DNA from: Phallusia mammillata
Taxonomy: Eukaryota
Assembly (NCBI GenBank): GCA_965637545.1
Contig: OZ281500.1
Span: 7,998,001-8,062,000 of the forward strand
Direction of reading: 5' to 3'
DNA length: 64,000 nt
Under the pieces are notes generated by a model. It did no database searches. It saw nothing but the letters and a program-made list of their open reading frames with translations, and was not told where the DNA came from. This document shows, one piece after another, positions 24,042 through 49,000 of this stretch. Position numbers and translations under genes: made by a program. Positions within the stretch are counted from its first letter, which is position 1. Each line of letters begins with the position of its first letter.

Positions 24042-26765
24042 TTACCGCCTGATAAACTTCCCGCGACCTCGCCCCAAACCAATGATAGATCGCGCTTGCG
24101 CCAGATTTGCTTCGCTGCCGGAAAGGGTAGTATTATCTTTTGGGCTGGCGCTTTTGCATGATCCGGTACCAGCAGCCGCTGCAGCGTACGTATTTTGAAA
24201 GCCACTGTATTGAGGTGTAGTGTATGGTTTGCATGACGGGTGCTGGGGACCAGTTGGAATTTCGTCTGACAATTTCAAGCTCTTTGGAAACTGTGCCGCC
24301 ATAACACCAACTTTGGCATTTGCAAATGGCTTATTTTTTGGACGGCGACTCATTTCGGATGGCTTGCAACTTGGCATGGACACCGGAGGCGGCAAGTCGT
24401 TATCACTGAACTGCTGCGTTGAGTCTATTATTCCATTTGTTACAGTTGATGTAGCAGACGCATTTTCAATGAAGGAGGTACCGCCTTCGCCATTATCATG
24501 TTCACTTTCTGACGCAGTGGCTGGTCCATGTGGTACAATCTCGTATTGGGCACGGTATCGTATATCTCTTGAGCCGAACTGAGAACCACCGTCTGGTGTA
24601 AATGATGCCGGCAAACTTAAGCCAGCGTCGTAACCACTTTCCTTTGACAGTGGATTTACTCTTGGGCCTGAACGGCGTGGCCTTTCGTCAATGATTATTC
24701 GTTCCGGTGGTGTGACGATGTAGGAGGGTGCTTGTCGAACCGGTAGATGGTTGTCCGTCACTTCAAATCCGTACACCGACGAAAGGCAATCGCTCATCCA
24801 ATAACAGCACTTTTTCGCTACAAGTAGGGCACAGTGGATGCATTCAATATCATCGTGATAATTACATTTTGTGTCGGACTCGTAGTCAAACATCGAACTG
24901 CTGCAGCCATCCTCGATTGTAGTGCGGGAAGGCCGAGTAACACCAGCGTGGTCAAACAATTCAACAGCAATGTCTTCCAACTCAAAAACCTTGTGTAGGC
25001 GATTGGCAATGCCAGCTCGAGCAGCCATCCAGTCCAGACAGTACAATGTTTTTCGAAGCTCACAAGTTCTTGTGTACAATGGTGGAAAGTTAAGTAAATT
25101 TCCATCTTCACTGATAAACTGCAGTAACTCTCTCCACATCTTGTCGTATTGCCCACATGCCAGTTCGAAATTTGCTTCAGGAATGCGGTGAGTTTTCTCC
25201 CGGAAGATGCTAACCTCTCCCCGCATGCCCATTTTAATAGGTCCTAAACATAAACAGGTATTTTTACGCTAACATTCTCATAAACACAAAAAAATGTGTT
25301 GGCATATTATGTAATAATAATGTCAACTAACATTATTTTTATCAGCTCTAGTTTGTCAAACCACATTTACATAAGGCTGTTATCAACCTGGATCAATAAA
25401 ATGATGCCATGTTCGCAAAATTCCTCCACTTAGTGTGTAATCAATGCATGCAACTTCGCAAGGTTGGTATCCTTCTTCATCAGGTAGCTCAAACAAAGAT
25501 TTGAAGGAAATAATGTAGAAGTGTACGTTGCATACGCCTGTAATATTCATAGATTTTAGTGCATAAGTTTAGATATTAAAAAAACTGCTGGAATAGTTTT
25601 ACTGCTTGCAGACAATTTGAAAAATTTTGAAAATGTTGTCCAATGTCATTCTGCCATTCATGTAAAAAAAATTAAAGTCGATGTTCTACGAAGCCTCATA
25701 TTTAGATGTCAGTACTTGGCTATGGCAAGAATTGGTGATCACAAGCTGAAGGAACCAGTTAATTGGTCAACACTAAAACACAGAAAATAGTATTTTACCG
25801 AATCCTTTCGGCCACATACTCCTTGCTGATTTTCTGTTTTCTTTTCTCTTTTTGTCCAAGAAATCATCAAAGTCAACTCTATCCTGTCAAAAACATTTGA
25901 CACAGATATGTTTGTTGCTCTGCTAAACACACAAACTATATTTAACCAGTGTGCTATTTCAGCTTTATTAAAGATATATCAAACTGCATTTACACTGTGT
26001 TTCCTACAGTTTCTGCCGTGGTGTACTATGTACAGTAATAACTAGTTCAATTTGTTGATAGGGTTCCTCTATTTCCCGGAATTGAGAATCTAAAATTGTT
26101 ATTTCCCAGGAATTTCGAGATCCCGACAAAATAATTTGACAATCTTTTGTGTGTTAGTCCGATAATTAAAATTAGTTTACATAAATTCAAAAAAAATGTT
26201 ACATTAACCATTATGCTAATTAATGTAACATTTGCTCGAATGATTCAGAAATATGACCAGTTGTTTTTTGAAGATTAACATCATAAAAAATATGTTTTTT
26301 ACTTGATTGCTGTTTTCCTGGGAACAAAATTCAATTGGAATATCCTGTGCATTTCATATCGAAACATTCCTGGTAGGGTACCCTAGTTGTGGATAAATAA
26401 AAAAAACCTACATCAATTCTTTTCCCAGTGCAATCAAGTCGACCAGGTCTAGGCTGATTGCGATTTGTCATCTTCCACTCTTTGGCTTTTGCTTCATATG
26501 GGGCCTTTTCCTTTGGTGACATGTTCTAAAAGGAGAAAACATCAAAAAATAAACACACAATTTGCATGACCAATGACCACATCCAAACCTTCCATGTTTC
26601 ATGAACTAATGGAACTGCTTCGCTTTTGTTCGAAACAGGCTTTCCTTGTCTTTTAAACTCTTTCATTGCTTCATCAAGATAAAAACTAAAGGCATTTCTT
26701 GGTGCTTTCTTTTTGCTTTTTTTAGGCTTGTTTAGCATTAAATCTTGACCACCAACAGCATACAT
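24042..26765 (-). CDS. MAEL: Maelstrom (piRNA pathway; HMG box plus MAEL domain), ~566-575 aa, 5 exons
   Basis: Exons start at 26765 or 26738 and run to 26589, then 26525-26412, 25883-25799, 25537-25388, 25243-24042. The N-terminal HMG box reads APRNAFSFYLDEAMKEFKRQG...WKNMSPKEKAPYEAKAKEWK. The MAEL domain reads YQPCEVACIDYTLSGGILRTWHHFIDPG...THRIP...FDYESDTKCNYHDDIECIHCAL (Cys/His zinc-type cluster). Disordered tail. Confidence 0.9.
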
Positions 26766-28554
26766 TTTGTTGTTTATCTTGACAGCACAACTCAATCTAT
26801 GTCATAACAACATAATTATACATCAAAAATTATCACAATTACAAATTGACCATATTTTAACATTTTATTGTTTAACCAACAAACAAAGTGAACAATGCAT
26901 GGGTGACACTGAGACTAGGTCAGGGGTGTGCATACTGCTATTGACATGGTCCGCTCTTATTAAATAGTTCATTGTTTTATACTTTTCACTGGTAAATCGT
27001 AGGAAGTTGTATTTGCACTGCATTGCTGGCAGTTTTGACATTGCGTTACAAAATATGGTTTAAAGCTCTTTGTGGAACTTTGTTTAAAATTTTCCCTTTA
27101 TGGCCGCCTTTTGTGGGGGGTGCAAACTGCAGGTCGGGAACCACTGCAATAAATGATTTTTTCATTACAATGCATGTGTGGTTTTATTGCCTGGCCCTCA
27201 GGATCATTATAGTAAATTTTGGCCCATTGCAAAAATCAGTTGCATGCATCTGCACTAGGTTAAGGACTTTTTACATAGTAAACTAGTATTAAACTTGGTC
27301 AAGAATGTAGAACTCTGGTACATGCAGTTCTTGAATATTCCTGTAAAGCAGTTTCAAATTTCTTATGTAGTGTGAGCAAGCAATTATAATTTTTTGTTTG
27401 GGCTTAATACATTGTATAACTGACGTAAGTCTAACTTTTTGCTGCGTGCGGATAGAGTTGTACAGAAACAATCCTTTGTGTATTTTAACTGTTTCTATTT
27501 AAAAAAAAAAAAAACATTTTGCAGCAAGTCTACATGATAAAAAACAAAACTTTGTGTACAAACTTTGTAAGACAAAGGTGCGGCAGGTATCGTTTTAGTT
27601 TTATCTGGCCTTTCTACAGTCATCAAAATTGCACACCCACGGGACTACTGTGAAAGTTTTGCAAACCATGTGTTCCCAGCAAAAACTTACTTCTTCCAGT
27701 TTTCATGGTCCAGTAATTTTGTTTTGTTGACATGACGTAATATATTTTTGGTTACAAGACTTTTTCAAAAATGCATTATCAGGGGTCAATTGAAAATGCT
27801 TGAGGTTAATCGTAAGGAAACATATAGTTTGACGTTACTTGTAGAACAAAATAATTTTCCAGATTTGATCAGGCACGCACGCATGCTGGCAGCATAGGCT
27901 ATGCTGCATAGCCTACCCAAATGGATATGACCATGACGACCCTCGTCACGTGGGTCACGAGAGAGCGGTCAGAGGTTAAGTGCCCCGTCAAATCGACACC
28001 AAACAATATAAACAATCGAGTCTGTTCCGAAATCTGAGTCCCTTTTACTTAAATTAATAAACTCAACAACTCAACAATTTGTGAATCCACACTAGATCCA
28101 CACAGTGAAATGTGACGCAGCCTCGACCCCATGAACGGTCCAACCCTTTGTGAGGGAATATATGCAAAATTATGAAATCACCTGTTTAATTAGGCTGTTT
28201 TAACGACATGTGATGTGTAAAGCAAAACTGCAAAAGATTACGTTTTGTCAAACGTAAGATATGCCCACTGCTTTGTGGATTGTGCAGTTGCGAAACAGAA
28301 ACAATAGTCATGTGCGGAGAGTGAGGTAGTCTTGTATGACGCAACATCATTTAACCGACTAAATGGAGCTGTTGCAGAAAGAGCAGTACACCAGGAAGTA
28401 GGCTAGCTAGGCCCGTTTGTTGCACCTATTATTTGCAGCATTCCCGTAACAGATTTAGGTATTGTTAGATTTATCAATAAAGTTTAAGAGAAAGGGCATG
28501 AATAACTTTTTTCCGCACTCGCCACCTGCAGGACCAGCAAAGTTCAAAGAAGTT

Positions 28555-29267
28555 ATGGAGGAAAATGCAAGCTTTTACGAAGAGATACCCCCTTTGCCAA
28601 ACAGTTACGTTGACCCAGCAACAACAGCTAAAATCAATGGCATTCTTACAGCTGTTCGCAACATCGAACAACACGTGAGCATTGCGTATCAACCACCCAG
28701 ACCACCGAAACCATCTCCAACATCAAAAACGCCACCTCCAGTGAAATTAGGTGTGTAAGTAGGCTGTAGCGCTACATTGAAAACATTGTAGTAGCCTAAA
28801 ACTTGTATTTAAGCCAGTCAGCTTTTCGCTAAGCTTTATTCATGCAAACGTTTGTACAGTTGTGGCAAAATGTCATACACTGTAAGGTTTATAGTTTATA
28901 CAACATAGCCTACCTATCAAAATCTGGGAAACTTTTTTAATTTGTTTTGACTCGTATAGACGCAGTACGTTTGCTTGGTAATTATATGTAAATTCTGCAA
29001 GTACAGTTAAACCTAATTTTGTAACATGTTTTTGTAGATGTGGATTTTCATGAACTTCCCCCACCGAGGCCACCTAAAACCAATTCGGCCCATATCGAAA
29101 CTCCAACAAAAACTTTTAACCCATCACAATGCAGTTACTTCCTTAAAAACCTAAAAGACGTTAGAAGCTTTATTGATGAAAATTTCGAGGACGAATACGT
29201 GGACAAGGAGCCTGCAATGATTGCCATGAATACGTTGGTTCGGGCATTTGGCGAACAGAAAATGTAA
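28555..29267 (+). CDS. Unknown small protein, family member A (141 aa, 2 exons)
   Basis: Exons 28555-28750 and 29038-29267 (phase 1, 426 nt): MEENASFYEEIPPLPNSYVDPATTAKINGILTAVRNIEQHVSIAYQPPRPPKPSPTSKTPPPVKL/DVDFHELPPPRPPKTNSAHIETPTKTFNPSQCSYFLKNLKDVRSFIDENFEDEYVDKEPAMIAMNTLVRAFGEQKM. An acceptor at ~28531 keeps the frame open, so an N-terminal extension is possible. Confidence 0.75.
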
Positions 29268-29721
29268 ATATGTACACAAAGTGCACTTGTTGATGTGCAC
29301 ATCAACATTTTAATGTAGTAGACCGTGGGTATTGACACGCTTCGAACCGAAGACATCTCCGCAATGAACGAGGGTGTGTCATGTGCATTGTTATTTTCCC
29401 GCTATCTTTGCAATGTTCAAATGCTTATTTGCATTGTGCATTTTGAAATATCAAACGCAATCCTATAACTTTGTGACAAGTTTTCACATTACTAAGCTTC
29501 TACTGCTGTACAGTTTTTCGCTTTCAGTTTTAAATAAAATATTCTTACGTCAAGACTTTGTTAAATGAACAATAAATGCTTTTGCTTGCCTACTTGGTGG
29601 CCATCTTGAACAGAATTAAGGACTTACACGTACCGAACACAAGGCATTTACAAATTTTATTGATCTAAAAGAGTATGTACCAAGTAATACTGGTCGCAAC
29701 GTTGCGTTTAATAAACTAGTG

Positions 29722-30175
29722 CAGTGTTTCTCAACCTGGGGGTCGCGACCCCCCAAGGGGTCGCCAAGCACTTTTGAGGGGGTCGCGGAGACGCAACCCA
29801 ACACGGAATTATTTTATCTGTATCAAAAAAACTTTCCCTGTGACTTTTGTTTAGCATATAGTAACTCACACGACCGTTTGATTTAGAACGGGCGCAACAA
29901 TATTTGCGATTGTATACTTCTATAATTGCGGGTTTTGGTTTTTCTTAACATAAAAAAAACACGAAATAGTGAAATAGTTAGTGAAAAATAGGCGTTTTCC
30001 GGAATACAGCAAAACGCCGAACTATTGCAGCCACGTTAGATTGCAAATGTGTGATGAACACAATCAACACATGCTGGTAGTTAAACTTCCTGTGTGTGTG
30101 CGTGTGTAAAGGGGTCGCGTGGTGTTAGAAAATCTCTAAAGGGGGTAGCATAGTAAAAAAGGTTGAGAACCACTG
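29722..30175. mobile_element. hAT/Charlie-type MITE (copy in duplication unit 1)
   Basis: TIR CAGTGTTTCTCAACC / GGTTGAGAACCACTG (1 mismatch). Perfect 8-bp TSD AACTAGTG with a CTAG core. Subterminal GGGGTCGC repeats. Confidence 0.92.
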
Positions 30176-30831
30176 AACTAGTGGTTTTCCTGTGTGAGAG
30201 CAGCCAAGTTTCCACAACCAGTTCTACCGTTAACATTTCAGTGGGTTGTTGTTTTGTAGGTTTCCTTTTGGCATCTGTTTAATGCTGAAAGAGGCGTCAC
30301 GGAAATTGATGACTCAGAGGACATGTAGGTATAAAGCCTTATACAATCATACGTGAATAGTCACTACAGTTGCGGTTAATAAAAACGTTAAGTTTTTTTA
30401 ATCAGGTTTGCACGTGCACTGTATTTTTTTATGAGATAATTGTGGTTAGGTTCATAGTTCAATTTTTTAGGTGATAGTTCATATTAGCAGAGTACAAAGG
30501 TGTTTGGGTAAGTGGCTCACATTTCACTGATGAAACATAATAGATACAATCTCTCATCGGTTTCTCAAGGAAGTTAGATCGAAAGTAGTAATGACAAACA
30601 GCAAGGCAAGTCATACTAGGCAGAGAGGATGAGAAATTTTAAATTAAGTTTTAGCTATTCATGCTAGGATTTTTTTGTACTACACAGTACGATGACAATA
30701 ACTAAAGACAAGAACGAAATCTATTGAAACCTAGACAATGTGCTTGCTGTGGTGGACATCATTTTTTGCAACAAGTAGGCCTAATCGCTTAACGTGTGTT
30801 TCTTTTTCAGCATTCTATACGTAAATTAGAA

Positions 30832-31290
30832 ATGTCTTATGACACATCTTACATAACGATGACGCCAAACCGCAACAGCGCGAAGGGAAGGATCGACCAA
30901 ATATGGGACGAAGTTACCAAACTCCAACAGTTGACAAGGCAGAAATTTCCAGCAATAAAACCTCCACCAATGTCGGAAAGCGATCTTGGCAGACCACAGC
31001 AAGGTATGTTTCAATTTTTTTGAAAACAATAATCAATCAAAAACCGTGATTTTTATGAGAGTTGTTTTGCAGCCACCTATGCAGATAGATCGCTGCCAAC
31101 CCCTGATATTATGAACTGTCCCCCCAGCCGGCTTCCCAAAACCTACGAAGAGGAGCAAATCAAATTTTTGTTAAAGTTGTTACTTGATGTCAAGGATTTT
31201 CTGAATCACCAATTCGATGAAAAGAGCAAACAGAAACAACTTCATGTGGACATGATCGACAAAGTGATCCAACAAATAAAAACACCATAA
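30832..31290 (+). CDS. Unknown small protein, family member B (129 aa, 2 exons)
   Basis: Exons 30832-31003 and 31073-31290 (phase 1, 390 nt): MSYDTSYITMTPNRNSAKGRIDQIWDEVTKLQQLTRQKFPAIKPPPMSESDLGRPQQ/ATYADRSLPTPDIMNCPPSRLPKTYEEEQIKFLLKLLLDVKDFLNHQFDEKSKQKQLHVDMIDKVIQQIKTP. Strong acceptor TTTTTCAG at 30810. Confidence 0.75.
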
Positions 31291-31648
31291 AAGCCATTGA
31301 CACACAAAAAAGGAAACCTTTTTGTATAGCTGTTTGCACTACTATTCCTGGTCAAATGTTTGTTTGTTCGGTTTTAACTGCATCATTGTTATTGTCCGCT
31401 TTAGTTGTCCCGGCTTTCGTGCACAACAGTATCACTCTGATGGATTGCATTAAATAATGATCAACTTGTCTTGTATTTAGCGAGAGTAACTGTGCTATAC
31501 AGGATTGGACATGCACTCAGTTTAAAACAAGTTGCTATGTTAAAACGCTCAGGTACGACAATACATGCAAATGCAGAACAGGACTAAGGTTTGAAAAAAC
31601 AATGCGATAGAATTCATATCATCTTGTTTTAATTTACAGCACATTTAG

Positions 31649-32443
31649 CTATTTAATTTTGGATTGAACATTTGGAACTGCAAAACCCTTCAGGGCCAGT
31701 TTAACATCGCTAAGAAGCTTTTCGTTGTCAAGACGTCCTTTATACCCGTTTTCAAAGTTTTCAGCAATAAATATTTCAACCTGGGTTATCTGATTAATTA
31801 GGAAGGTACATTGGTCGGATGTAAAATTGCAAGGTTTAGAGGATCTTTTTGATTTTTTCAAGGAAAGAACTTCTTTGCCTTCTTTGGGATTGCTTTTTGA
31901 TGATTTTGCTTTGTTTTTTTCCTTGTTTTGTTTTCGACCTGTGTATATTGAAACACTTTTCAGATAGAACAAAACATGTAAATTACGAACAAGGTTGCAA
32001 AATGCGCAGGCCTAGGGCGCAAACATGAAAGTATATAAGCCCGAACCTGGTTAAAACCCGAACTCGTTTTTTTAAACCCGAATTAGGTTTCAAAGTAGAT
32101 GGCATTGCCGAATCTATAGCCCGATTTTATTTAAACTTAGCCCGAACCCAGCTCAAATCTGATCCTATAAAAATCCATCCCGACTTACAACGCTGAAACT
32201 ATATGATTAGTTTGTTTAAACCACAGCAAAATTCTGACAAATTACAACAGGAAATTTCGTCATACCCGATTTACTGCTTTCAAGATATGCTGCTGGTTTC
32301 GGTGGACGGTCAGGCGTTGGCAGAGGCTGCGTTTCCAAACGTTTGTTTAAAGCAGATAGTTTATGATATATTTCATCGAGAGTTTGGGTCGTTCCCTGTG
32401 CATCTAAATCCGGGTACCGCATTGCTGGAAGTTCGTAAGACAT
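31649..32443 (-). CDS. Unknown small protein, family member C (155 aa, 2 exons)
   Basis: Exons 32443-32266 and 31938-31649 (phase 1, 468 nt): MSYELPAMRYPDLDAQGTTQTLDEIYHKLSALNKRLETQPLPTPDRPPKPAAYLESSKS/GRKQNKEKNKAKSSKSNPKEGKEVLSLKKSKRSSKPCNFTSDQCTFLINQITQVEIFIAENFENGYKGRLDNEKLLSDVKLALKGFAVPNVQSKIK. Candidate 5'UTR intron 32597-32470. Confidence 0.75.
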
Positions 32444-32744
32444 TTTTTCAGCCTTCACCAAGTGTCGATCTATAAATTTCAGCAACTTTTATTGCCACTT
32501 CTTACAGTTCCAATAAGAGCGTTGGTGGTTATGAACTATATAAAACAAACAAAGATACAACCCACTGAGATTTTAAATTTTTTACTTTGCAGCTTACCCT
32601 CAAAATGTAATTAAGGGTGCATTAATATCTGACTTTTTACACAATGCCAATTTCACTTCTACCTCTACTTTCTTGCTAGTAAATTACTGACTTGCCTGAC
32701 GGGCTGCTGGGAATGCCAAACTATATACGCATTCAAGTATTACG

Positions 32745-33393
32745 ACAGCTAAAATCAATGGCATTCTTACAGCTGTTCGCAACATCGAACAACACGTGAG
32801 CATTGCGTATCAACCACCCAGACCACCGAAACCATCTCCAACATCAAAAACGCCACCTCCAGTGAAATTAGGTGTGTAAGTAGGCTGTAGCGCTACATTG
32901 AAAACATTGTAGTAGCCTAAAACTTGTAGGCTATTTAAGCCAGTCAGCTTTTCGCTAAGCTTTATTCATGCAAACATTTGTACAGTTGTGGCAAAATGTC
33001 ATACACTGTAAGGTTTATAGTTTATACAACATAGCCTACCTATCAAAATCTGGGAAACTTTTTTAATTTGTTTTGACTCGTATAGACGCAGTACGTTTGC
33101 TTGGTAATTATATGTAAATTCTGCAAGTACAGTTAAACCTAATTTTGTAACATGTTTTTGTAGATGTGGATTTTCATGAACTTCCCCCACCGAGGCCACC
33201 TAAAACCAATTCGGTCCATATCGAAACTCCAACAAAAACTTTTAGCCCATCACAATGCAGTTACTTCCTTAAAAACCTAAAAGACGTTAGAAGCTTTATT
33301 GATGAAAATTTCGAGGACGAATACGTGGACAAGGAGCCTGCAATGATTGCCATGAATACGTTGGTTCGGGCATTTGGCGAACAGAAAATGTAA
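32745..33393 (+). pseudogene. A': 5'-truncated duplicate of family member A
   Basis: The duplication breakpoint removes the first 23 codons, including the ATG. The upstream in-frame sequence reaches TGA (32697-32699) without an ATG. Exon remnant 32745-32871 and exon 33164-33393 remain, with two amino-acid changes (NSVH, FSP). Confidence 0.7.
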
Positions 33394-33847
33394 ATATGTA
33401 CACAAAGTGCACTTGTTGATGTGCACATCAACATTTTAATGTAGTAGACTGTGGGTATTGACACGCTTCGAACCGAAGACATCTCCGCAATGAACGAGGG
33501 TGTGTCATGTGCATTGTTATTTTCCCGCTATCTTTGCAATATTCAAATGCTTATTTGCATTGTGCATTTTGAAATATCAAACGCAATCCTATAACTTTGT
33601 GACAAGTTTTCACATTACTAAGCTTCTACTGCTGTACAGTTTTTCGCTTTCAGTTTTAAATAAAATATTCTTACGTCAAGACTTTGTTAAATGAACAATA
33701 AATGCTTTTGCTTGCCTACTTGGTGGCCATCTTGAACAGAATTAAGGACTTACACGTACCGAACACAAGGCATTTACAAATTTTATTGATCTAAAAGAGT
33801 ATGTACCAAGTAATACTGGTCGCAACGTTGCGTTTAATAAACTAGTG

Positions 33848-34302
33848 CAGTGTTTCTCAACCTGGGGGTCGCGACCCCCCAAGGGGTCGCCAAGCACTTT
33901 TGAGGGGGTCGCGGAGACGCAACCGAACACGGAATTATTTTATCTGTATCAAAAAAACTTTCCCTGTGACTTTTGTTTAGCATATAGTAACTCACACGAC
34001 CGTTTGATTTAGAACGGGCGCAACAATATTTGCGATTGTATACTTCTATAATTGCGGGTTTTGGTTTTTCTTAACATAAAAAAAAACACGAAATAGTGAA
34101 ATAGTTAGTGAAAAATAGGCGTTTTCCGGAATACAGCAAAACGCCGAACTATTGCAGCCACGTTAGATTGCAAATGTGTGATGAACACAATCAACACATG
34201 CTGGTAGTTAAACTTCCTGTGTGTGTGCGTGTGTAAAGGGGTCGCGTGGTGTTAGAAAATCTCTAAAGGGGGTCGCATAGTAAAAAAGGTTGAGAACCAC
34301 TG
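33848..34302. mobile_element. hAT/Charlie-type MITE (copy in duplication unit 2)
   Basis: Same TIRs and AACTAGTG TSD as 29722-30175. Copied with the segment rather than inserted independently. Confidence 0.92.
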
Positions 34303-34958
34303 AACTAGTGGTTTTCCTGTGTGAGAGCAGCCAAGTTTCCACAACCAGTTCTACCGTTAACATTTCAGTGGGTTGTTGTTTTGTAGGTTTCCTTTTGGCA
34401 TCTGTTTAATGCTGAAAGAGGCGTCACGGAAATTGATGACTCAGAGGACATGTAGGTATAAAGCCTTATACAATCATACGTGAATAGTCACTACAGTTGC
34501 GGTTAATAAAAACGTTAAGTTTTTTTAATCAGGTTTGCACGTGCACTGTATTTTTTTATGAGATAATTGTGGTTAGGTTCATAGTTCAATTTTTTAGGTG
34601 ATAGTTCATATTAGCAGAGTACAAAGGTGTTTGGGTAAGTGGCTCACATTTCACTGATGAAACATAATAGATACAATCTCTCATCGGTTTCTCAAGGAAG
34701 TTAGATCGAAAGTAGTAATGACAAACAGCAAGGCAAGTCATACTAGGCAGAGAGGATGAGAAATTTTAAATTAAGTTTTAGCTATTCATGCTAGGATTTT
34801 TTTGTACTACACAGTACGATGACAATAACTAAAGACAAGAACGAAATCTATTGAAACCTAGACAATGTGCTTGCTGTGGTAGACATCATTTTTTGCAACA
34901 AGTAGGCCTAATCGCTTAACGTGTGTTTCTTTTTCAGCATTCTATACGTAAATTAGAA

Positions 34959-35417
34959 ATGTCTTATGACACATCTTACATAACGATGACGCCAAACCGC
35001 AACAGCGCGAAGGGAAGGATCGACCAAATATGGGACGAAGTTACCAAACTCCAACAGTTGACAAGGCAGAAATTTCCAGCAATAAAACCTCCACCAATGT
35101 CGGAAAGCGATCTTGGCAGACCACAACAAGGTATGTTTCAATTTTTTTGAAAACAATAATCAATCAAAAACCGTGATTTTTATGAGAGTTGTTTTGCAGC
35201 CACCTATGCAGATAGATCGCTGCCAACCCCTGATATTATGAACTGTCCCCCCAGCCGGCTTCCCAAAACCTACGAAGAGGAGCAAATCAAATTTTTGTTA
35301 AAGTTGTTACTTGATGTCAAGGATTTTCTGAATCACCAATTCGATGAAAAGAGCAAACAGAAACAACTTCATGTGGACATGATCGACAAAGTGATCCAAC
35401 AAATAAAAACACCATAA
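34959..35417 (+). CDS. B': intact duplicate of family member B (129 aa)
   Basis: Exons 34959-35130 and 35200-35417. Only a synonymous CAG/CAA difference from B was seen. Confidence 0.72.
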
Positions 35418-35775
35418 AAGCCATTGACACACAAAAAAGGAAACCTTTTTGTATAGCTGTTTGCACTACTATTCCTGGTCAAATGTTTGTTTGTTCGGTT
35501 TTAACTGCATCATTGTTATTGTCCGCTTTAGTTGTCCCGGCTTTCGTGCACAACAGTATCACTCTGATGGATTGCATTAAATAATGATCAACTTGTCTTG
35601 TATTTAGCGAGAGTAACTGTGCTATACAGGATTGGACATGCACTCAGTTTAAAACAGGTTGCTATGTTAAAACGCTCAGGTACGACAATACATGCAAATG
35701 CAGAACAGGACTAAGGTTTGAAAAAACAATGCGATAGAATTCATATCATCTTGTTTTAATTTACAGCACATTTAG

Positions 35776-36570
35776 CTATTTAATTTTGGATTGAACATTT
35801 GGAACTGCAAAACCCTTCAGGGCCAGTTTAACATCGCTAAGAAGCTTTTCGTTGTCAAGACGTCCTTTATACCCGTTTTCAAAGTTTTCAGCAATAAATA
35901 TTTCAACCTGGGTTATCTGATTAATTAGGAAGGTACATTGGTCGGATGTAAAATTGCAAGGTTTAGAGGATCTTTTTGATTTTTTCAAGGAAAGAACTTC
36001 TTTGCCTTCTTTGGGATTGCTTTTTGATGATTTTGCTTTGTTTTTTTCCTTGTTTTGTTTTCGACCTGTGTATATTGAAACACTTTTCAGATAGAACAAA
36101 ACATGTAAATTACGAACAAGGCTGCAAAATGCGCAGGCCTAGGGCGCAAACATGAAAGTATATAAGCCCGAACCTGGTTAAAACCCGAACTCGTTTTTTT
36201 AAACCCGAATTAGGTTTCAAAGTAGATGGCATTGCCGAATCTATAGCCCGATTTTATTTAAACTTAGCCCGAACCCAGCTCAAATCTGATCCTATAAAAA
36301 TCCATCCCGACTTACAACGCTGAAACTATATGATTAGTTTGTTTAAACCACAGCAAAATTCTGACAAATTACAACAGGAAATTTCGTCATACCCGATTTA
36401 CTGCTTTCAAGATATGCTGCTGGTTTCGGTGGACGGTCAGGCGTTGGCAGAGGCTGCGTTTCCAAACGTTTGTTTAAAGCAGATAGTTTATGATATATTT
36501 CATCGAGAGTTTGGGTCGTTCCCTGTGCATCTAAATCCGGGTACCGCATTGCTGGAAGTTCGTAAGACAT
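35776..36570 (-). CDS. C': intact duplicate of family member C (155 aa)
   Basis: Exons 36570-36393 and 36065-35776. The translation is identical to C in the ORF track. This copy keeps the original upstream flank. Confidence 0.72.
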
Positions 36571-37430
36571 TTTTTCAGCCTTCACCAAGTGTCGATCTAT
36601 AAATTTCAGCAACTTTTATTGCCACTTCTTACAGTTCCAATAAGAGCGTTGGTGGTTATGAACTATATAAAACAAACAAAGATACAACCCACTGAGATTT
36701 TAAATTTTTTACTTTGCAGCTTACCCTCAAAATGTAATTAAGGGTGCATTAATATCTGGCTTTTTACACAATGCCAATTTCACTTCTACCTCTACTTTCT
36801 TGCTAGTAAATTACTGACTTGCCTGACGGGCTGCTGGGAATGCCAAACTATATACGCATTCAAGTATTACGCATGTGCGGATATGCACAGCAACGCGTCA
36901 CAGGTTTTGTTACCAAGGTCTCCACAGTCAAAGCAAACATACATTTCCACTTTTTGCGACACTGGTCACACTGGATTCCAAAATATTTAACATGACATAT
37001 GTTTAACAAAACATGTCCTTCGATTATATTTGTAAAAAATAGTCTTTATAATGTTTTCGTATTAGCTTTGTTGTAAAACATGTTTTTTTGAACAACCAGT
37101 CCTCTGTCACCGCGATCATTCAATTCCATGTTCCAATTTGCTCTATACATGGCAGCAATGCGTAAATAATATAAAGAAGAGAACACATTTTGACTTGGGA
37201 TGGTGTCGACAAGTTCTATTTCAGTCTGGGTCAACACATTGTGAACGTTAAACATTAATGCGAAGGACGGTTTTTCCCGAATGGTTTCAACAAGTTAAAT
37301 ACACGACTTTCCTAACGTTGGTGCTGTGATTGTTCGTATGCTTCAACATACAGAGAAATTTTCTTCAAGCGTTTAAACGTGTAAGTAAGTCTGCGACTGT
37401 TGTTTCACTGCATTTAAATCAAAATCAGTC

Positions 37431-37811
37431 ATGTGCAGTCAACCCACGCAAGCTGAAAGCGACGCCAAGTTTGATAAGATTTTAATGCTTTTGGAAAACA
37501 CAAACGAACGATTGTCACAGTTGGAAAGACAGCAAAAGCCACAAAAAACTGAAAGTGGCAACGAATACACCGTACTGGAGGTGGCTTCTGTAGCAAAAGG
37601 AACAACAGGTTGTGGAAATACCAACCTTGCAAGTCAGCACAAGTCTGGAAAGTTCTTTGATGATCAGCAACGAATATTTTTATCTTTGCAATTGGAGGAG
37701 GTACTGCAATTTTTGCGACCACTGCCATGTGAAGATGTTCAGACCAAAAAACTGCAAATCCAAAATCTTAAGTCTGTTATAGCAGCCATTAAGGTCGACA
37801 AACGACATTAA
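37431..37811 (+). CDS. Unknown small protein, family member D (126 aa, uninterrupted CDS)
   Basis: MCSQPTQAESDAKFDKILMLLENTNERLSQLERQQKPQKTESGNEYTVLEVASV...FFDDQQRIFLSLQLEEVLQFLRPLPCEDVQTKKLQIQNLKSVIAAIKVDKRH. Same N-helix and C-terminal pattern as A/B/C/E. Candidate short 5'UTR intron 37381-37428. Confidence 0.72.
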   Translation: MCSQPTQAESDAKFDKILMLLENTNERLSQLERQQKPQKTESGNEYTVLEVASVAKGTTGCGNTNLASQHKSGKFFDDQQRIFLSLQLEEVLQFLRPLPCEDVQTKKLQIQNLKSVIAAIKVDKRH

Positions 37812-38021
37812 AACTGTAATAAGTGGCTTTTATTTATGTAAACGACTTAGGCATAAAAATGTAAGAGAGTATCAAACTCCTTGAAACGATTAGCTGTTAA
37901 ATATGTTTTCAAAGCATTTATTGATACGTGGTGGTGTGCATATCCTCTTGGACAAGTTTGTAAGATCCACTAACACTTTGACACTTACGCGTTTTTTTTT
38001 CGATTTTGTTTGTCTATATAC

Positions 38022-38473
38022 CAGAGCTCTTCAACCGGGGTTCCGCGGAACCCTAGGGTTCCGTACAACCCTTTCAGGGGTTCCGTGAACTTTAAGGGTT
38101 GCACGGGAAATAGCAATTCGAACACGAATGATTCATAGTATCATTGTTTCGAACAGCAATGCTCGCCTGTGCAATATTGGAAACCTTTGTTATACCATTG
38201 ATCAATTGTGACGTAATATACACAACCTTGTTACACTCTAGCTAAGTTGCGAGATTAATGTAGAAACGACCGATCCAAATAACACGGCAATGCGTTTCAG
38301 TTAACCGTTTAATTCAAGTCAACCTTTGTGATGTGCTTTGGATGTGTATGCATCTTTTTTCTTTGATGTAGCCTACTTGTATTACATTCATTAAAATTAT
38401 TTTATGGGGGTTCCGCAAAGTTTGACAAAATACCGTAAGGGTTCCGCGTCACTAAAAAGGTTGAAGAGCACTG
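38022..38473. mobile_element. hAT/Charlie-type MITE, second family
   Basis: TIR CAGAGCTCTTCAACC / GGTTGAAGAGCACTG (1 mismatch). Right flank GTCTATAC, left flank GTCTATATAC (TSD with an extra TA). Subterminal GGGTTCCG repeats. Confidence 0.85.
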
Positions 38474-38875
38474 GTCTATACTTACGTATATTCGGTACTC
38501 TTGCAGTCCGGTTTTTGCTACAAAAAGTCCTAAACATATGTCCATGATGCTATAAAATGCTTTTTAGAATTAAAAAAAAAATCTTTTCACAACAGCTTTT
38601 TGCGTTTGCAGAGTTATTTACGTTTGATATTTCAAAATAGATTTGTATGTGCTTTTTGTGATGCCATTTAGTCCATACATCCTACGTACATTGCGTTTTC
38701 AGAACAAATAGTAGTAAATGGATTAAGGCTCTGTGTACAAATGTGACGCTCGTTTTGGCACAGCGCCTCACCAGACCGTAGCGACTGCTGTAACATTCTT
38801 TCCTTGTACTGATAAGGTGCGTTAGGTCTGAGACAAGCAAACACCGTGACGGTCTACGTGAGGAAAGTTAGAGAC

Positions 38876-39644
38876 ATGGAGAATCTAGGTGCTACCAACC
38901 ATTACGCCGAGATCACGGACGGTAACTACTGTATACCTCAACCAATGACAGGAAAGCAAGGTACATTGGACAGCAAGCTCGATGAAATGTTGATAAGAAT
39001 TCGACGCATTGATAAGTCACTGCACGATGGCAATAGCGGACAACCAAACAAACCAATAGTTCCACCAAAACCACCATCAAAAAGCAGCAAGTTCGTCCCT
39101 GTGTTTAACAGGCTACAGTCAGGTATTTAACAGTTTTTACTTTTTGTCTTTAACACATACGGAAGTATTTTTGTGTTGTTTAGTGCAGGTGTACTTCTTT
39201 TGCTCAGTTTTTGCCGATTTACGCTAAAGTACAAACACATAATTGTAAAACATATAAAGTACAATTGTTTGATTTGTCAAAACCTTTATAGTTTTAGAGT
39301 GATAATATCGTACTTCGACATTGCTGTACTGTAGTATTTACACAACAATCAAACGTTTGGATAAGAAAACTGGAATAGTTGTCTTTGTGGCATTTGTTTA
39401 TTTGGATAGACTGCATGTTTTGTTTTTAGAACCTCCACCTCCTCCACGCCCAGCGAAGTCTAATAAAGGAGCACCGATTCCGGATTCCGGAAAGACATTA
39501 CCCAGACCCGAATGCGACTTTCTTGTGGCGCAACTGCAAAACGTCAGGTCGTATCTTGATGACATGATTGACGACGATTTTGACGGCAAACTTGAAAATT
39601 TGTCAACTTTGGACAACGTTATTGGCGCTCTTTTGTGCCGCTAA
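38876..39644 (+). CDS. Unknown small protein, family member E (153 aa, 2 exons)
   Basis: Exons 38876-39122 and 39430-39644 (phase 1, 462 nt): MENLGATNHYAEITDGNYCIPQPMTGKQGTLDSKLDEMLIRIRRIDKSLHDGNSGQPNKPIVPPKPPSKSSKFVPVFNRLQS/EPPPPPRPAKSNKGAPIPDSGKTLPRPECDFLVAQLQNVRSYLDDMIDDDFDGKLENLSTLDNVIGALLCR. Confidence 0.78.
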
Positions 39645-42600
39645 CGCCAAAAAGTTCATCCCAAGTCCAGAATATTTTGGAATGTGGCCATTTAATCATA
39701 TCGTGTTTTAACTTCTGCCAGCAAATGCTTTGTCAAGCTTAAAAAAGATTCAGTAGAGTTTGTAAACACGTTTTTGGAGAAATGCAAAAAAAACGCTTTG
39801 ACCACAGCTTTCAGCATGGCTGCATGTTCACCATACCTTCAAGATGGCTGATCGCACAACTTAGCGTGACTAAGCAACGTAATTGTTAAATCTAGTCACA
39901 TTCTAGGATAGGATTGACAATGCTAAAGTCATAAAAGTAGGTCCCATATGATACAAAAAATTTATCACCTCATGTGTTCAGTTATAAAACATCTGCTTTA
40001 AATATAAAAACGGTGTACTTATTGTTGTTTTGTTAGCTTTATTGTAAAGCATGCTGTATAACCAGTCAGTCGTGTCATGTTGTTTCGTACTGTGTGGAGT
40101 GACTGCGACGATCTTGTCCAAACCAATGGCTTTGCCATGTATGTGCATAGAACACTTGATTGCTGCCAGTGTACATGAGTTTCATTTGCTTTGTGACCTC
40201 TTAGCAAATAATGGTATTTCACGCACTCTAGTCAATTTACCGATGTTAAATTGAACTCGGTTGCGTTGTAGGTTGACGAAACTGTATTGCAGTTAGTTGG
40301 GAAACTACATCATGGACCAGTTGCGTGCATATTTGTGTACACGATTGCACAAACCCGAAAGCACTTGTAAACTGTTTCTGTGTAATATTTGAGTTTGTGG
40401 GGTTTATTGCTGCGTTGTAACATGCTGGTCAAACAGCAAAACAATATTTTCCTAAAGCAGGTATGCTTATAGGCATTGATTTGTTACATGAGCAATATGT
40501 TTTGCTGTATATTCAGTTGTTTTGCAGAAGTTTTTTGCTTGTTTTCGTTTTTTTATGTATACGCAATTTACAATACATCGATTTGTGTGTCGGCCCTGTA
40601 TATCGATTTTTTCACCGTTTGCGTACGTGCACTTACTGCAACCACGTCGAAGGTCGAACATCCATGTAAACAAAGGTCAGAAACTCTTTTGCCTAAAAGG
40701 TGAACCCTTGTCACTGTAGTTCAAGTTTAACAACGTGATGAAAACTGTTGCCATTTGCCAGTTTTCAAAAATAACAAGTAAAAGCCAAATGTTTACTCAG
40801 TACAAAACAATGGGTTACTAGATTCATTAGTCCCAGCATAATACCGTAGAACCCTACTTCTTCAAAACTCATTAATCAGTCGCGCGCCACAAAGGACATT
40901 ATTCTGATCCACCGAGCATGTCGTTTTTTATGGGATGAAAGATTTTGTATGCGTGGCGTAGAAAGGACTTTGAACTATAGGACAAGAATGAATCTTTTCT
41001 ATATCTAACTTATGTATCTTGACGACCCAAACCAAAACATTTGTTGGCTGATAATGTTGCTATGGTTGGTTGTGGATTGCTGAAACCAATGTGTTGCAAG
41101 TTATCAATGAATGTAGGATTGAAAGTGACCTCTAAAAAGTATACGCGTGTAACCTAGGATTTTAATTTTTAATTTTTTTATTTAACGGGGTTCGAACCCC
41201 CCAGTCAGAAAATATCTCGGAGTTATCCCCGGGCCAAACTAGGGATTTGGGACACTGTTCGAATTAGCAGTGGTTTATCTTAGATTAACTCAGATAAGTG
41301 TTCTTACACATTTTTCTTATTTGAGGTTGTGGAGACGATGTTTTAACAAGTAAACAATATTTTAATTCATGTTATTGCAAACTATGTTAATCTTGTGGAA
41401 AACTGTTTCTATGATTATCTGCGATAACCCATGGGTAAATCGTGGAAGTACCGATGGTATTTTCGGAATCCTGTGTTATTGCCAAATCAATGACTTTACA
41501 TCAAATTTACTGTTTAAATAAGTTTAAATTTGTATCTAGCCTACACAACTAATGCCCTATAGGCCGACATAAAACGCGTGGGCAAAAAATTATCAATAGA
41601 GCTTTTTTTTACACTCGCTGTACACATTTTTTTCGTTGTTGAAACATACAATACACAAACTATGCGAAATATTTTAAAATTATTGGCTGGTTTCGTCACT
41701 GTGAGTCCAGTTATTCCCGCGTTTTATCTTTTTGAAAGAGTTTGGCAAGCGACCAGACTTGATTTCGCTAAAACGTTCTAGGTTTTGGCGAGTTTGTGGA
41801 ATACATTGCTTCATGAAACAAGCCATAAGGCAGCAGGTTTGTGGAATGTATAATGACATATGTAAAAGTCTTTTAGATGTAGGCCACGTTAACTGCTAGC
41901 AACACTATGTTTACATTTTCCAACTTACTCTGTATATGTTAAATCTTATTTGCCAGTAATTGCCGATTTCTATTGATTCCCGCATTTCCTCAGTACAACT
42001 TGTGTTGTAATCTATTGCGTTGTGTGACGTAATAATCGACTACCAGTTTTGTGTGATAACGCAGCGTGATTTAGTCCTTTTCGTTGCTGACTTCCGTGGA
42101 GCACGGTGCTGCGTCGGTTTTATTAGAAAAGCCGTTTATTGTCGTGTTGACGATTATTGGTGAGTCACTTTGTATATATATGTGTTTAATGACTCCAAAA
42201 CGTGAATTACTACAATAAATGCGAACTTAACTGCAATGACTTAAAATGTCATTTTGCTTTGTAATATTTGTACTGTACGTGTAGTTGGGTTCATTTATCC
42301 AACCATATTTTTTTTCTTAGGAGTATTGCAATTCACATCTTACAAGGATGCAACAATTGACAAAATCGAAAATGAAGTTACCGTTTCTCTGGCTGGGGAT
42401 TGGAATGGGAGGCGCGAGGAGAGAAGAAAAAAATTGAAAATTTAACAAATGAGAGTGACAGCAACACCAGTACGGACACCACACCATGTGAAGACTGCGA
42501 TGACATGGAATGAAATCCAGGTTTGGGGCAAAAGTTGCATCTGGCAAAATGGCAAAATACTGCCTAAACGACTTTTGCCCCAACCTGCTGTTTAAACTGT

Positions 42601-46051: not shown

Positions 46052-49000
46052 ATGACAATTCAACGACAACGACGTGGCATGGAAGGAACTGGCCTAGACC
46101 AGAAACGTTTAAGGTATTGTAGGTTTGCATTTGTCATACAATTACTAGAGGTTGATCACCATATATTTTTGCGTGACATTGCAAGATATAAAATGTGTAC
46201 ACACGTAACTTGTAACAACTTGTGTATAGTTTGTTTCCCTGCATTTCAATCATTTAAACTACAGAGCTTTTGCAGTTTTATAACTTTTTATTGAAATATC
46301 TGTTACAAGTTGTTAATGTCGGAAATTTTATGATAAGTTACCATAACGGTATAGATTTAGTGAAACCAGTTAACGTGTTGCTTCAAAAATCGAAATCTTA
46401 CAAAGATTTCACAAAAACTAAAACCCGCAAGTGGTATAACTGTCTGCAATTAAAAACTAAAAGCGAACCCATGTCAAGTTACTCACTGGAATGTGTATGC
46501 AAAGGTATGTGGACTCTTTACAAAGCTAGTCCACACAAAAGCAACTAAAACCCAGCTGCAACCGGACGGGCTGTACCATTGCGCCACTATCCTCACAATA
46601 AACAAAACCAGCGTACCAAGAGTTTACTCCGAGGTAGTAAAATTGTTTTAACTCTTATTTCAGGCTTCGCGATTGGCTGGAAATGCGAATCGGCGACCGC
46701 AAATATCCAGGGTTACGTTGGGAAAATCAACGAGAAGGAATTTTTCGGATCCCGTGGAAACACGGTGCGAGACATGGATGGAAGGAAGAAGAAGACGCGA
46801 GATTGTTCCGCGAGTGGTCGGAGCACACAGGTACAACATAAATTTTTTTGGCCTCATATATTTAGTCCCGCAAGAAGAGAATAGATTACTATTAACGATT
46901 ATCAACAACTAATGTTTAACAAATGGTTTTCTGGTATTCAGTTAAAGCGGTGCATTTTCGTTGAAGTTAAGTTTCTAAAAAAATCAATGGGCAAATATGT
47001 CAACTCACACTAAACATGTCTAAGGCGTAATAAAGTTGGCATGGTACGTTGTGCCTTGAATAGTATAATTACATATTTATGCAAAACTGCTAAATTGGGG
47101 ACGTTTGAACATTTTAATTATGCCCTATAAACATGTCATGCAAAAAGAGGACGCATTGTCTATGACATTCGAAGGAAAGAAATTTTGTCATGGGACTGTT
47201 TAAGTACTTTATACAAAATTTTTAGGTAATTTTCACAATTATTAGCCTGGAAAAGTGGAGCAAATTATAAATTTTCTGCCTTCTTGCAATTAATGCCCAA
47301 AGCAAGGCACTAAGGGCAAATAGTAATTAAGTGTGTCGTTATTTCCATATAACAGGGTTTGGCTTGTACAAAAAAAAAACGCATAGCGAAATACACCCAC
47401 CAACCTAATGATACAACCTATAAAAGGTATTTCAAATGCAGTTTATTGCCCGTTTTTATGACCAAAAGTCAATGTACAATGTCACGTCTTGGCGTGCCTT
47501 GCAATTTAGTTGTTTTTTTTGCATTTAGGTGCTTCACCGAAGGATGTAAAACAACACAAGGCAAATTTCCGCTGCGCCTTGAACTCGCTGCGAGATATCG
47601 AAAAGCTGCAAGTTTCCAACAAATGCAAGGGTGACGATGCCTACCGACTCTACAAACTTTTGCCGAAACGATCGACCAAGAGCGGTAATAGTAAGAACCA
47701 TACGCATTTTCACCGTTGCTTCCGTTCTTTATCCTTTATAGGCTATAACGAGGCTTTATTTGTTTAAGAGTGGATAAGAAAGCGAACGCCCTCAACAAAA
47801 GCCCCGCCTCTGCGACCGCGGCGCTCACAATTTGCAACGTCGCAGATCACTTCGTTTGCTCACGAGCGAAAAACTCCCCTCTCTGCTCCGCCTGGATCAA
47901 CACCAGGGACTTTTGGAAGTGCGGTTTACGCTGGGTCGAATTCGTACGACAGACTCAACTTTTCGCAGTACTTGGCCCCTCGTGAAACAAGTGACTTTGT
48001 TTACAATGAGATTCCCACGCCGCCCATAGCTTTCCCAACCTCGCAGATGGAAGTAGCGACGTTGCACCCAGCTATGCCGATCTCACCTTACAATGGGTGC
48101 TTTCCCAACCCTTCGTCGGCTGCTTTAGAGCATTTCGGCGAATACCGTAATGACTCACCGCAACAAGGGCAAAGTTTTATTTACCCATCGCCGTCAGGCA
48201 CGATTGCCGACGCGTTAGGCGAGGCCACCGCTGCGGTGCAAAATTATCCCAACTACGGTCGTAACGACCTTGAACGCACCGTGAGCATTTCATCGAACCG
48301 TGGTACTCTCCTGTTTGACGACATGCTTCACCTGCAACCAAGTTTGATCGATACTCCTCCCCGGGAAGACGACACATTACCAGCTGGTGGCGGCTTTGAC
48401 CTGACTCAAAAGCAACCTGGAAAAGAATTAATAACATGGCCACAGGACCAAGTGCCATCGCCATCATTTCATTCAATGAAAGACGTTTCAGAATATTTGA
48501 AAGGTTTGTCTAAAATGTTCAAACATTTTAGCGTGTATGGGGTGTATGGGTAAAGCCGACCAAACAAAGAATGTTTTAGCAACTACTACTAATCCCCCTA
48601 AACGTATATCTCTGCAATGTAAAGTAGTAACAGCAAGTTGCAAAAAAAAACTGCTGGGCGGTAAAAACGCTCCCCATTTAGTTTACGTAATAAAAGTTTT
48701 ACAAACACCCATTTCCCTTTATTAAAAGTAAAACTTCAATTGTTTCCAGGTGACACTTTCGAAGACAATTCACAAGTATGGGACCTAACCACAAAGTTCC
48801 ACAAAAATGTAAGTCCCTGAAGTTCACGAGTTCGAACTAGAAGTAGCTTTAAAACGGCGACATTTTGTTTGCACAGACATTTACAACACCGTTACAAGAC
48901 CAGCAAGGCAGGTGCACGGATGCCGATTGGACAATGAAGGAGAGTTTGCAAGCAAATGACACACTTCTAGATTTTTGCGTCGAAGATTTGTCGATCGGAA

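Follow-up and report, generated by a model that had tools for sequence, protein, structure and literature searches.

The stretch of Phallusia mammillata DNA considered here (the window: 64,000 nucleotides of contig OZ281500.1, assembly GCA_965637545.1, positions 7,998,001 to 8,062,000) contains a cluster of paralogous genes, designated A to E, whose products end in a shared, predicted helical module of about 50 residues. The module had been noticed in a reading of the sequence alone, in which five C-terminal peptides were quoted and proposed as a candidate new domain. All five peptides are present in the window at the positions given for them, each reading into a stop codon, and they are the last coding parts of the five genes. 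Genes A, B, C and E are each split into two coding exons by a phase-1 GT-AG intron, which falls at an equivalent protein site in all four, and gene D is one uninterrupted frame of 126 codons without an intron. Searches and alignments treated each exon as a row of its own, not as part of a joined spliced protein.

Exon 1 of gene A (28498-28750, forward strand) holds, from sequence and alignments, the ATG, the tyrosine motifs YEEI and YVDP, an N-terminal helix (N-helix; 28627-28677) and a PPRPPKP stretch, with a phase-1 GT donor at 28751; the translated module with its stop (TKTF...GEQKM, 29106-29267) lies within the last exon, 29038-29267. Gene B, also on the forward strand, has an exon 1 (30832-31003) read from the sequence, with an N-helix at 30880-30939 and a proline-rich KPPP, followed by an intron (31004-31072) and a last exon (31073-31290) containing the module and stop (31138-31290). 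Gene C lies on the reverse strand; its exon 1 (32266-32443), likewise read from the sequence, encodes MSYELP..YPDL, an N-helix (32333-32389) and DRPPKP, the intron occupies 31939-32265, and the module with its stop (31649-31834) falls within the last exon (31649-31938). Gene D (37431-37811, forward strand, 126 residues), for which there is an orthologue, P0001, and an AlphaFold2 model, carries an N-helix (37449-37532), an EYTV tyrosine motif and the module (37647-37811). In gene E, on the forward strand, exon 1 (38876-39122; from sequence and alignment) has YAEI and YCIP motifs, an N-helix (38972-39022) and PIVPPKPPSK before a phase-1 donor at 39123, and the last exon (39430-39644) has PPPPPRPAK as well as the module and stop (39489-39644).

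Genes A, B and C are each present twice because of a tandem duplication of a 4.13-kb unit, the two copies of which (28621-32744 and 32742-36871) are 99.5% identical with 19 differences. The duplicate modules are A' (33232-33393, forward strand; two residue changes in the exon relative to A), B' (35265-35417, forward strand; gene 34959-35417) and C' (35776-35961, reverse strand; gene 35776-36570). The duplication boundary falls inside exon 1 of gene A, leaving a remnant of A' exon 1 at 32742-32870, and no in-frame ATG was found in the first exon of A', as the boundary cuts it. The repeat may have arisen by recent segmental duplication, or else it is an artefact of the assembly.

Transcription was approached through contigs of four RNA-type public runs aligned to positions 33750-39749, which indicate presence and splicing rather than expression level. 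The predicted GT..AG joint of the B' intron (35131-35199) is present in contigs of three runs, with spliced contigs identical to the gene, and the predicted joint of the C' intron, CT..AC on the forward strand, is present in one run (X9). One contig of run X18 spans 39466-39682 over the last exon of gene E; among the contigs of the four runs, no splice joint was found for gene E and no contig lies over gene D.

Conservation of the C-terminal module

Taken two at a time, the five modules are only faintly alike, with pairwise scores of 21-30 bits, and scanning the six frames with a loose motif picks out only B, C, D, E, B' and C'; A and A' escape it because Y-F-L stands where the pattern wants x-[FL]-[LIV]. 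When a profile from four of the five modules was run against the 1626 stop-to-stop open reading frames (ORFs) of the window, the member left out was recovered in the case of A (E 6e-7), E (2e-7), C (9e-5) and B (9e-4), and D was not recovered by the profile of A, B, C and E (2.4 bits). A profile of D and its orthologue aligns with that of the other four end to end, over 46 of 46 columns (P = 3e-5, probability 73%). By these comparisons, joining D to the other genes appears to have been impossible from the window alone and to have needed relatives.

Those relatives supplied a profile of 49 positions built from 23 modules, all from other species, which was compared with the six-frame ORFs of the window. 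It ranks the eight loci first, at E 4e-20 for E, 1e-18 for D, about 1e-16 for A and A' (3.5e-16 for A), 8e-7 for B and B' and 6e-6 for C and C', and the next ORF follows at E 1.8. The proposal of a module common to the C-termini of the five paralogues is confirmed by this recovery. Reciprocal recovery by profile, the check attached to that proposal, holds for every locus with the external profile and for A, B, C and E in the leave-one-out comparison, but not for D from the other four alone; the modules are recovered as a set because a profile from other species places all eight loci at the top. It is barely credible that the resemblance is one of chance or amphipathic-helix composition, or that the ORFs are not genes: the low pairwise scores and the failure of D in the leave-one-out comparison speak for such a view, but all modules are found by an independent profile from other species, spliced transcripts exist, and there are orthologues in three ascidian orders.

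Across 27 non-redundant module sequences, the best-conserved columns are K2, F4, Q8, C9, F11, L12, Q15, L16, V19, F/Y22, L/I/V23 and D24. The loop that follows is acidic and includes an aromatic residue, reading DDDF or EDEY in types A and E and PCxDK in type D; after it stand K37, in 26 of the 27, and then M/V/I41, L44, S46, V/I47, I48, A50 and L/I/F51. The consensus may be written GK[TF]F-x3-Q-C-x-F-L-x3-L-x2-V-x2-[FY]-[LIV]-D ... K-x3-[MVI]-x2-L-x-S-V-I-x-A-[LIF], and it ends no more than about 25 residues from the stop. The pattern offered in the sequence-only reading ([FYL]...FL...V..[FY][LI], an acidic loop, a basic residue and a second helix) coincides with these columns. Its extent of about 45 residues needs correction, as the module extends two to three residues further towards the N-terminus, to the conserved Lys of GK[TF]F, and is about 50 residues long; the one-residue offset seen in A at the FL does not exist, since A aligns without gaps, with Y-F replacing F-L as in some orthologues. 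The only gap in the whole module alignment comes from three residues inserted in one Ciona protein.

The module had also been called the most constrained part of the family, which is borne out, though narrowly: mean pairwise identity family-wide is 0.32 for the module, 0.27 for the N-helix and 0.21 for the alignable linker. Columns with an entropy below 1.5 bits number 15 of 49 in the module and 4 of 23 in the N-helix. Between D and P0001, which are 43% identical overall, conservation is concentrated at both ends, with 36 of 54 aligned residues identical in the module, 19 of 37 in the N-helix region and 5 of 53 in the middle. In a maximum-likelihood tree of the modules, a D-type clade is set apart (support 96/87) and the branches leading to B and C are long; the 49 columns are too few for finer structure.

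Relatives and predicted fold

Word-index protein searches with D alone or with the first alignment returned P0001 only, and a 32-row alignment returned four proteins. A full hidden Markov model (HMM) search of 1.84 billion protein representatives, using a profile with exons as separate rows (alignment A4), gave 22 relatives at E <= 1e-3, including 13 at E <= 1e-10, with lengths of 55-236 residues. All the named ones are ascidian proteins recorded as "uncharacterized" or "unnamed": four consecutive accessions from Clavelina lepadiformis (CAK8686623-26), XP_002130097 and XP_018670364 from Ciona intestinalis, H2ZD76 from Ciona savignyi and LOC120348100 from Styela clava; the remainder come from eukaryote-sized ENA contigs, Logan contigs and Joint Genome Institute (JGI) samples. 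Clavelina, Ciona and Styela belong to three different ascidian orders. Within the whole 240-Mb genome (312 contigs), no further members were found outside the cluster, the eight places all lying in the window, and none of the papers searched mentions the LOC or UniProt identifiers of the relatives. A 544-residue, bacterial-looking protein, P0028, shares a 90% cluster with a 56-residue module fragment (P0008); its sequence seems unrelated, and this is probably a clustering artefact.

Every full-length relative follows a common plan: one or two tyrosine motifs of the form YxxI/L/V/P, an N-terminal heptad helix, proline motifs and the C-terminal module. The heptad-patterned helix (K-L-D-E-I-L-x-R-V-R-R-I...) is present in A-E and in all full-length relatives, and this second conserved element of the family went unmentioned in the sequence-only reading. 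Tyrosine and proline motifs were compared between window exons (28498-28750, 30832-31003, 32266-32443 on the reverse strand and 38876-39122) and the relatives P0002, P0003, P0007 and P0019. E-type proteins have tyrosine motifs of the form YAxI...NYCx[ILV], and those of D-type proteins read [IV]YE[EA][IL]; where the motifs are in tandem, NYCx[ILV/P] stands 4-6 residues after YAxI, an arrangement kept across ascidian species. Class-II-type proline motifs, P-x-V-P-P-K-P and P-P-P-R-P-P-K, occur in A, B, C, E and most full-length relatives, and D has only QQKPQK at the PPKP/PPPRPPK site. One Ciona member (P0019) has an N-terminal CKGCCCC cluster that resembles a palmitoylation site. Taken together, the family appears to be lineage-restricted, so far occurring only in ascidians, and to be adaptor-like by its motif make-up.

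Structural predictions were made with AlphaFold2 for full-length D and for the last exon of A, each from a shallow alignment (10 rows for D, 6 for A). The D model has the N-helix at residues 7-34, then a disordered stretch, then helices at 78-95 and 103-125 joined by a seven-residue loop; the predicted local distance difference test (pLDDT) score, as a mean over 10-residue blocks, is 96-97 over residues 81-120, and the predicted template modelling (pTM) score is 0.43. For the last exon of A (exon 2), helices at 28-48 and 56-72 are again joined by a seven-residue loop, with block means of 90-94. High pLDDT values for isolated helices from shallow alignments are to be read with care, yet two distant paralogues agree. 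The helix-loop-helix foreseen from the sequence is therefore reproduced in both models, and the module is predicted to form, at the C-terminus of each family member, a hairpin of two antiparallel helices some 50 residues long.

Searches for a known domain returned noise or generic hairpins. In a 2025 copy of Pfam-A, no family reached the gathering threshold, and none matched any exon or the 32 aligned members beyond coiled-coil-type noise, in which no family is found in more than 4 of 32 members and the lowest E, 0.0043, belongs to a single member. The family profile found no PDB sequence for the module, with weak GCN4-zipper matches on the N-helix only, and Foldseek gave no PDB match at E <= 1e-3. 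VIA-align against 48,161 chains peaked at Z 6.7 (D) and 6.4 (A), with only the hairpin aligned and both values lower than the background that the tool states for helical models. The neighbours that recur for both models are helical hairpins: IcmR with IcmQ (Z 6.7 and 6.1), the RLIP76 Ral-binding domain, the BRAF BRS (6.3 and 5.8), MED7/MED21 (5.8 and 5.5) and the ESCRT-I core. Only the A model also matched 1ec5 (5.9), a designed helix-loop-helix model of a four-helix bundle. The BRAF, IcmR, MED7/MED21, ESCRT-I and 1ec5 hairpins resemble the module in having a pair of antiparallel helices, each about 20 residues long, and a short loop, with some 50 residues aligned at Z 5.5-6.7, but they bear no sequence relation to it (2-15% identity) and their Z scores are within the background for helical models.

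The sequence-only reading had proposed a new domain falling outside existing Pfam families, and the lack of any match within the Pfam-A and PDB copies searched agrees with it. Because Pfam, PDB and fold searches yield noise or generic hairpins and the named relatives are all ascidian, the module would seem to be both undescribed and lineage-restricted; within those copies it is best regarded as a previously undescribed domain with an ordinary fold. That it is instead a strongly diverged member of an existing family, such as the HTH_PIK3AP1 region of BANK1/BCAP (PF28470), is very unlikely. Tunicate proteins do evolve fast, and a language-model look-alike search of the ESM Atlas with Ciona P0003 ranks a BANK1 fragment cluster first with a score of 0.80; however, by the tool's own note, that score is attained by one third of shuffled proteins, so the P0003 leads are at noise level, the same search with D is empty, and the Pfam and PDB profile searches are blank.

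Several more specific identities were considered and rejected. The comparison with FAT-like bundles suggested from the sequence brings out shared features: FAT and FAT-like domains (Cas family) are also C-terminal helical targeting domains in adaptors with tyrosine and proline motifs, and the N-helix of D, E and C, L-D-x-[IM]-[LY]-x-x-L, is close to the paxillin LD motif, LDxLLxxL. A FAT bundle, however, has four up-down helices over about 130 residues, whereas AlphaFold2 gives the module two over about 50; no FAT domain is among the top structural matches, and there is no Pfam FAT match. Nor can the acidic loop be read as that of an EF-hand, which is usually paired and has 12 loop residues with Asp/Asn/Ser at positions 1, 3 and 5, Gly at 6 and Glu at 12: the predicted loop has about seven residues, no register fits both A-type and E-type loops (columns 24-37), and there is no EF-hand Pfam match. 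A transmembrane adaptor of the LAT, PAG or SCIMP kind, marked by an N-terminal transmembrane helix and a juxtamembrane Cys for palmitoylation, is likewise rejected, as no hydrophobic transmembrane segment was seen in A-E or the relatives and the Cys cluster is confined to Ciona P0019; LAT-type adaptors have a transmembrane helix, and the present family differs from them in having none.

Candidate roles of the hairpin

Dimerisation, or docking on a common partner, had been suggested for the module in the sequence-only reading. The reading favoured here, tentatively and at a little less than an even chance, is that the hairpin is a pairing module which completes a three- or four-helix bundle, possibly with the N-helix, and so makes the adaptor multivalent. 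A second hairpin would be its partner in the bundle, so that the paralogues would form homo- or hetero-oligomers, possibly with participation of the N-helix, and this pairing would cluster linkers with SH2- and SH3-ligand-like motifs into a multivalent scaffold. Both helices conserve an a/d core (C9, L12, L16, V19 and L/I23; M41, L44, I48 and L51), and flanking positions are also conserved (Q8, Q15 and F22; N/Q40 and V47; the small residues S46 and A50). As this conservation exceeds a single a/d stripe, and a hairpin this short would probably not bury its conserved surface alone, contact with further helices is suggested. The conserved hairpin and the conserved N-helix flank a variable, disordered linker with SH2-type and SH3-type ligand motifs. 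Several of the hairpins matched by structure (the BRAF BRS, IcmR with IcmQ, MED7/MED21, the ESCRT-I core and 1ec5) complete four-helix bundles with a partner.

A number of observations weigh against pairing. The structural matches are an analogy only, because Z below 7 is the range for any helical hairpin. Polar surface residues conserved across old paralogues (Q8, Q15, K37) would suit a common partner from outside the family no less well than self-association. In the D monomer model, structural neighbours align with residues 61-126 only, and no compact bundle of N-helix and hairpin is evident. The charge of the N-helix is anticorrelated with that of the module (rho -0.57, uncorrected for kinship), which is a hint only because related sequences are not independent.

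Docking of the hairpin to one common partner outside the family, such as a kinase, a GTPase or a receptor tail, would make it the targeting end of the adaptor, as the RLIP76 hairpin binds Ral; this is a less probable though still serious candidate. It agrees with the retention of the surface polar residues Q8, Q15, D24 and K37 (26 of 27) across both old subfamilies, with the recurrence of the RLIP76 Ral-binding hairpin as a structural neighbour (Z 6.5 and 6.0, root-mean-square deviation 1.9 and 1.5), and with members having no membrane anchor of their own save the Cys cluster of one Ciona protein. Yet the Z scores are no higher than background, and the loop differs sharply between the subfamilies, DDDF/EDEY against PCxDK. 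The same two conserved elements could alternatively form an intramolecular clamp, in which the N-helix would pack on the C-terminal hairpin as a three-helix bundle with the linker looped out, to be opened by phosphorylation or a ligand. The N-helix and hairpin always co-occur, both are conserved where the linker is not, both have wide hydrophobic faces, and the weak charge anticorrelation is in keeping with such packing; as fold searches with the D model align the hairpin only, giving no three-helix bundle, and the pTM of that model is 0.43, a clamp is considered unlikely.

Whichever contact the hairpin makes, a wider role may be asked of the family. Its nearest functional analogue is the Botryllus histocompatibility factor (BHF), described in a review as a cytoplasmic ascidian protein in which α-helices lie between disordered regions and several YxxI/L motifs occur; it sits beneath the plasma membrane and has been proposed to assemble receptor signalling complexes in a manner reminiscent of LAT (PMC12065747). 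The window family resembles it, in a comparison made by description only, in being ascidian and mostly disordered with YxxI/L/V motifs and helices, and one Ciona member has the N-terminal Cys cluster; BHF is absent from the 22 relatives of the HMM search. Tandem YxxI...YxxL/V motifs adjoining SH3 ligands suggest that the family may comprise scaffolds that are ascidian-specific, cytoplasmic and similar to LAT or BHF, serving tyrosine-kinase signalling of the immunoreceptor type, with the hairpin and N-helix as a new oligomerisation domain, although this is thought rather improbable as a whole. If it were so, the hairpin and N-helix would make the scaffolds multivalent, and the paralogues could mix into combinatorial hetero-oligomers.

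The members of the family are testable candidates for lineage-specific signalling scaffolds because SH2- and SH3-type ligand motifs are combined with two conserved helices. A conserved, foldable domain and its family are now defined where public records have "uncharacterized" only, and the animals that carry it are ascidians, among them the model chordate Ciona, whose immune and allorecognition signalling is poorly mapped. As helical hairpins are a common fold, the worth of the result lies in the definition of the family and not in a new structural principle.

Other features of the window

Repeat-like segments at 33842-34305 and 38022-38478 (also 29616-29886) have deep contig coverage in all four transcript runs. 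The contigs over them continue into dissimilar sequence, and they therefore probably represent an element of the short interspersed nuclear element (SINE) type, expressed or present at many loci. The window as a whole is animal DNA, with 34-45% G+C and short exons. A 193-codon ORF at 47972-48553 on the forward strand has no Pfam match. Before the module cluster, a 396-codon open exon on the reverse strand (24042-25232) matches the Pfam Maelstrom domain at 9e-18. A Sec24-type gene occupies 5597-12783 on the forward strand, with a Pro/Gln-rich N-terminal exon, a Sec23/24 zinc finger (1.5e-15) and a beta-sandwich exon (1.6e-12); inside this stretch lies a tandem repeat (7443-7630) with a 15-nucleotide period, the copies of which are about 90% identical.

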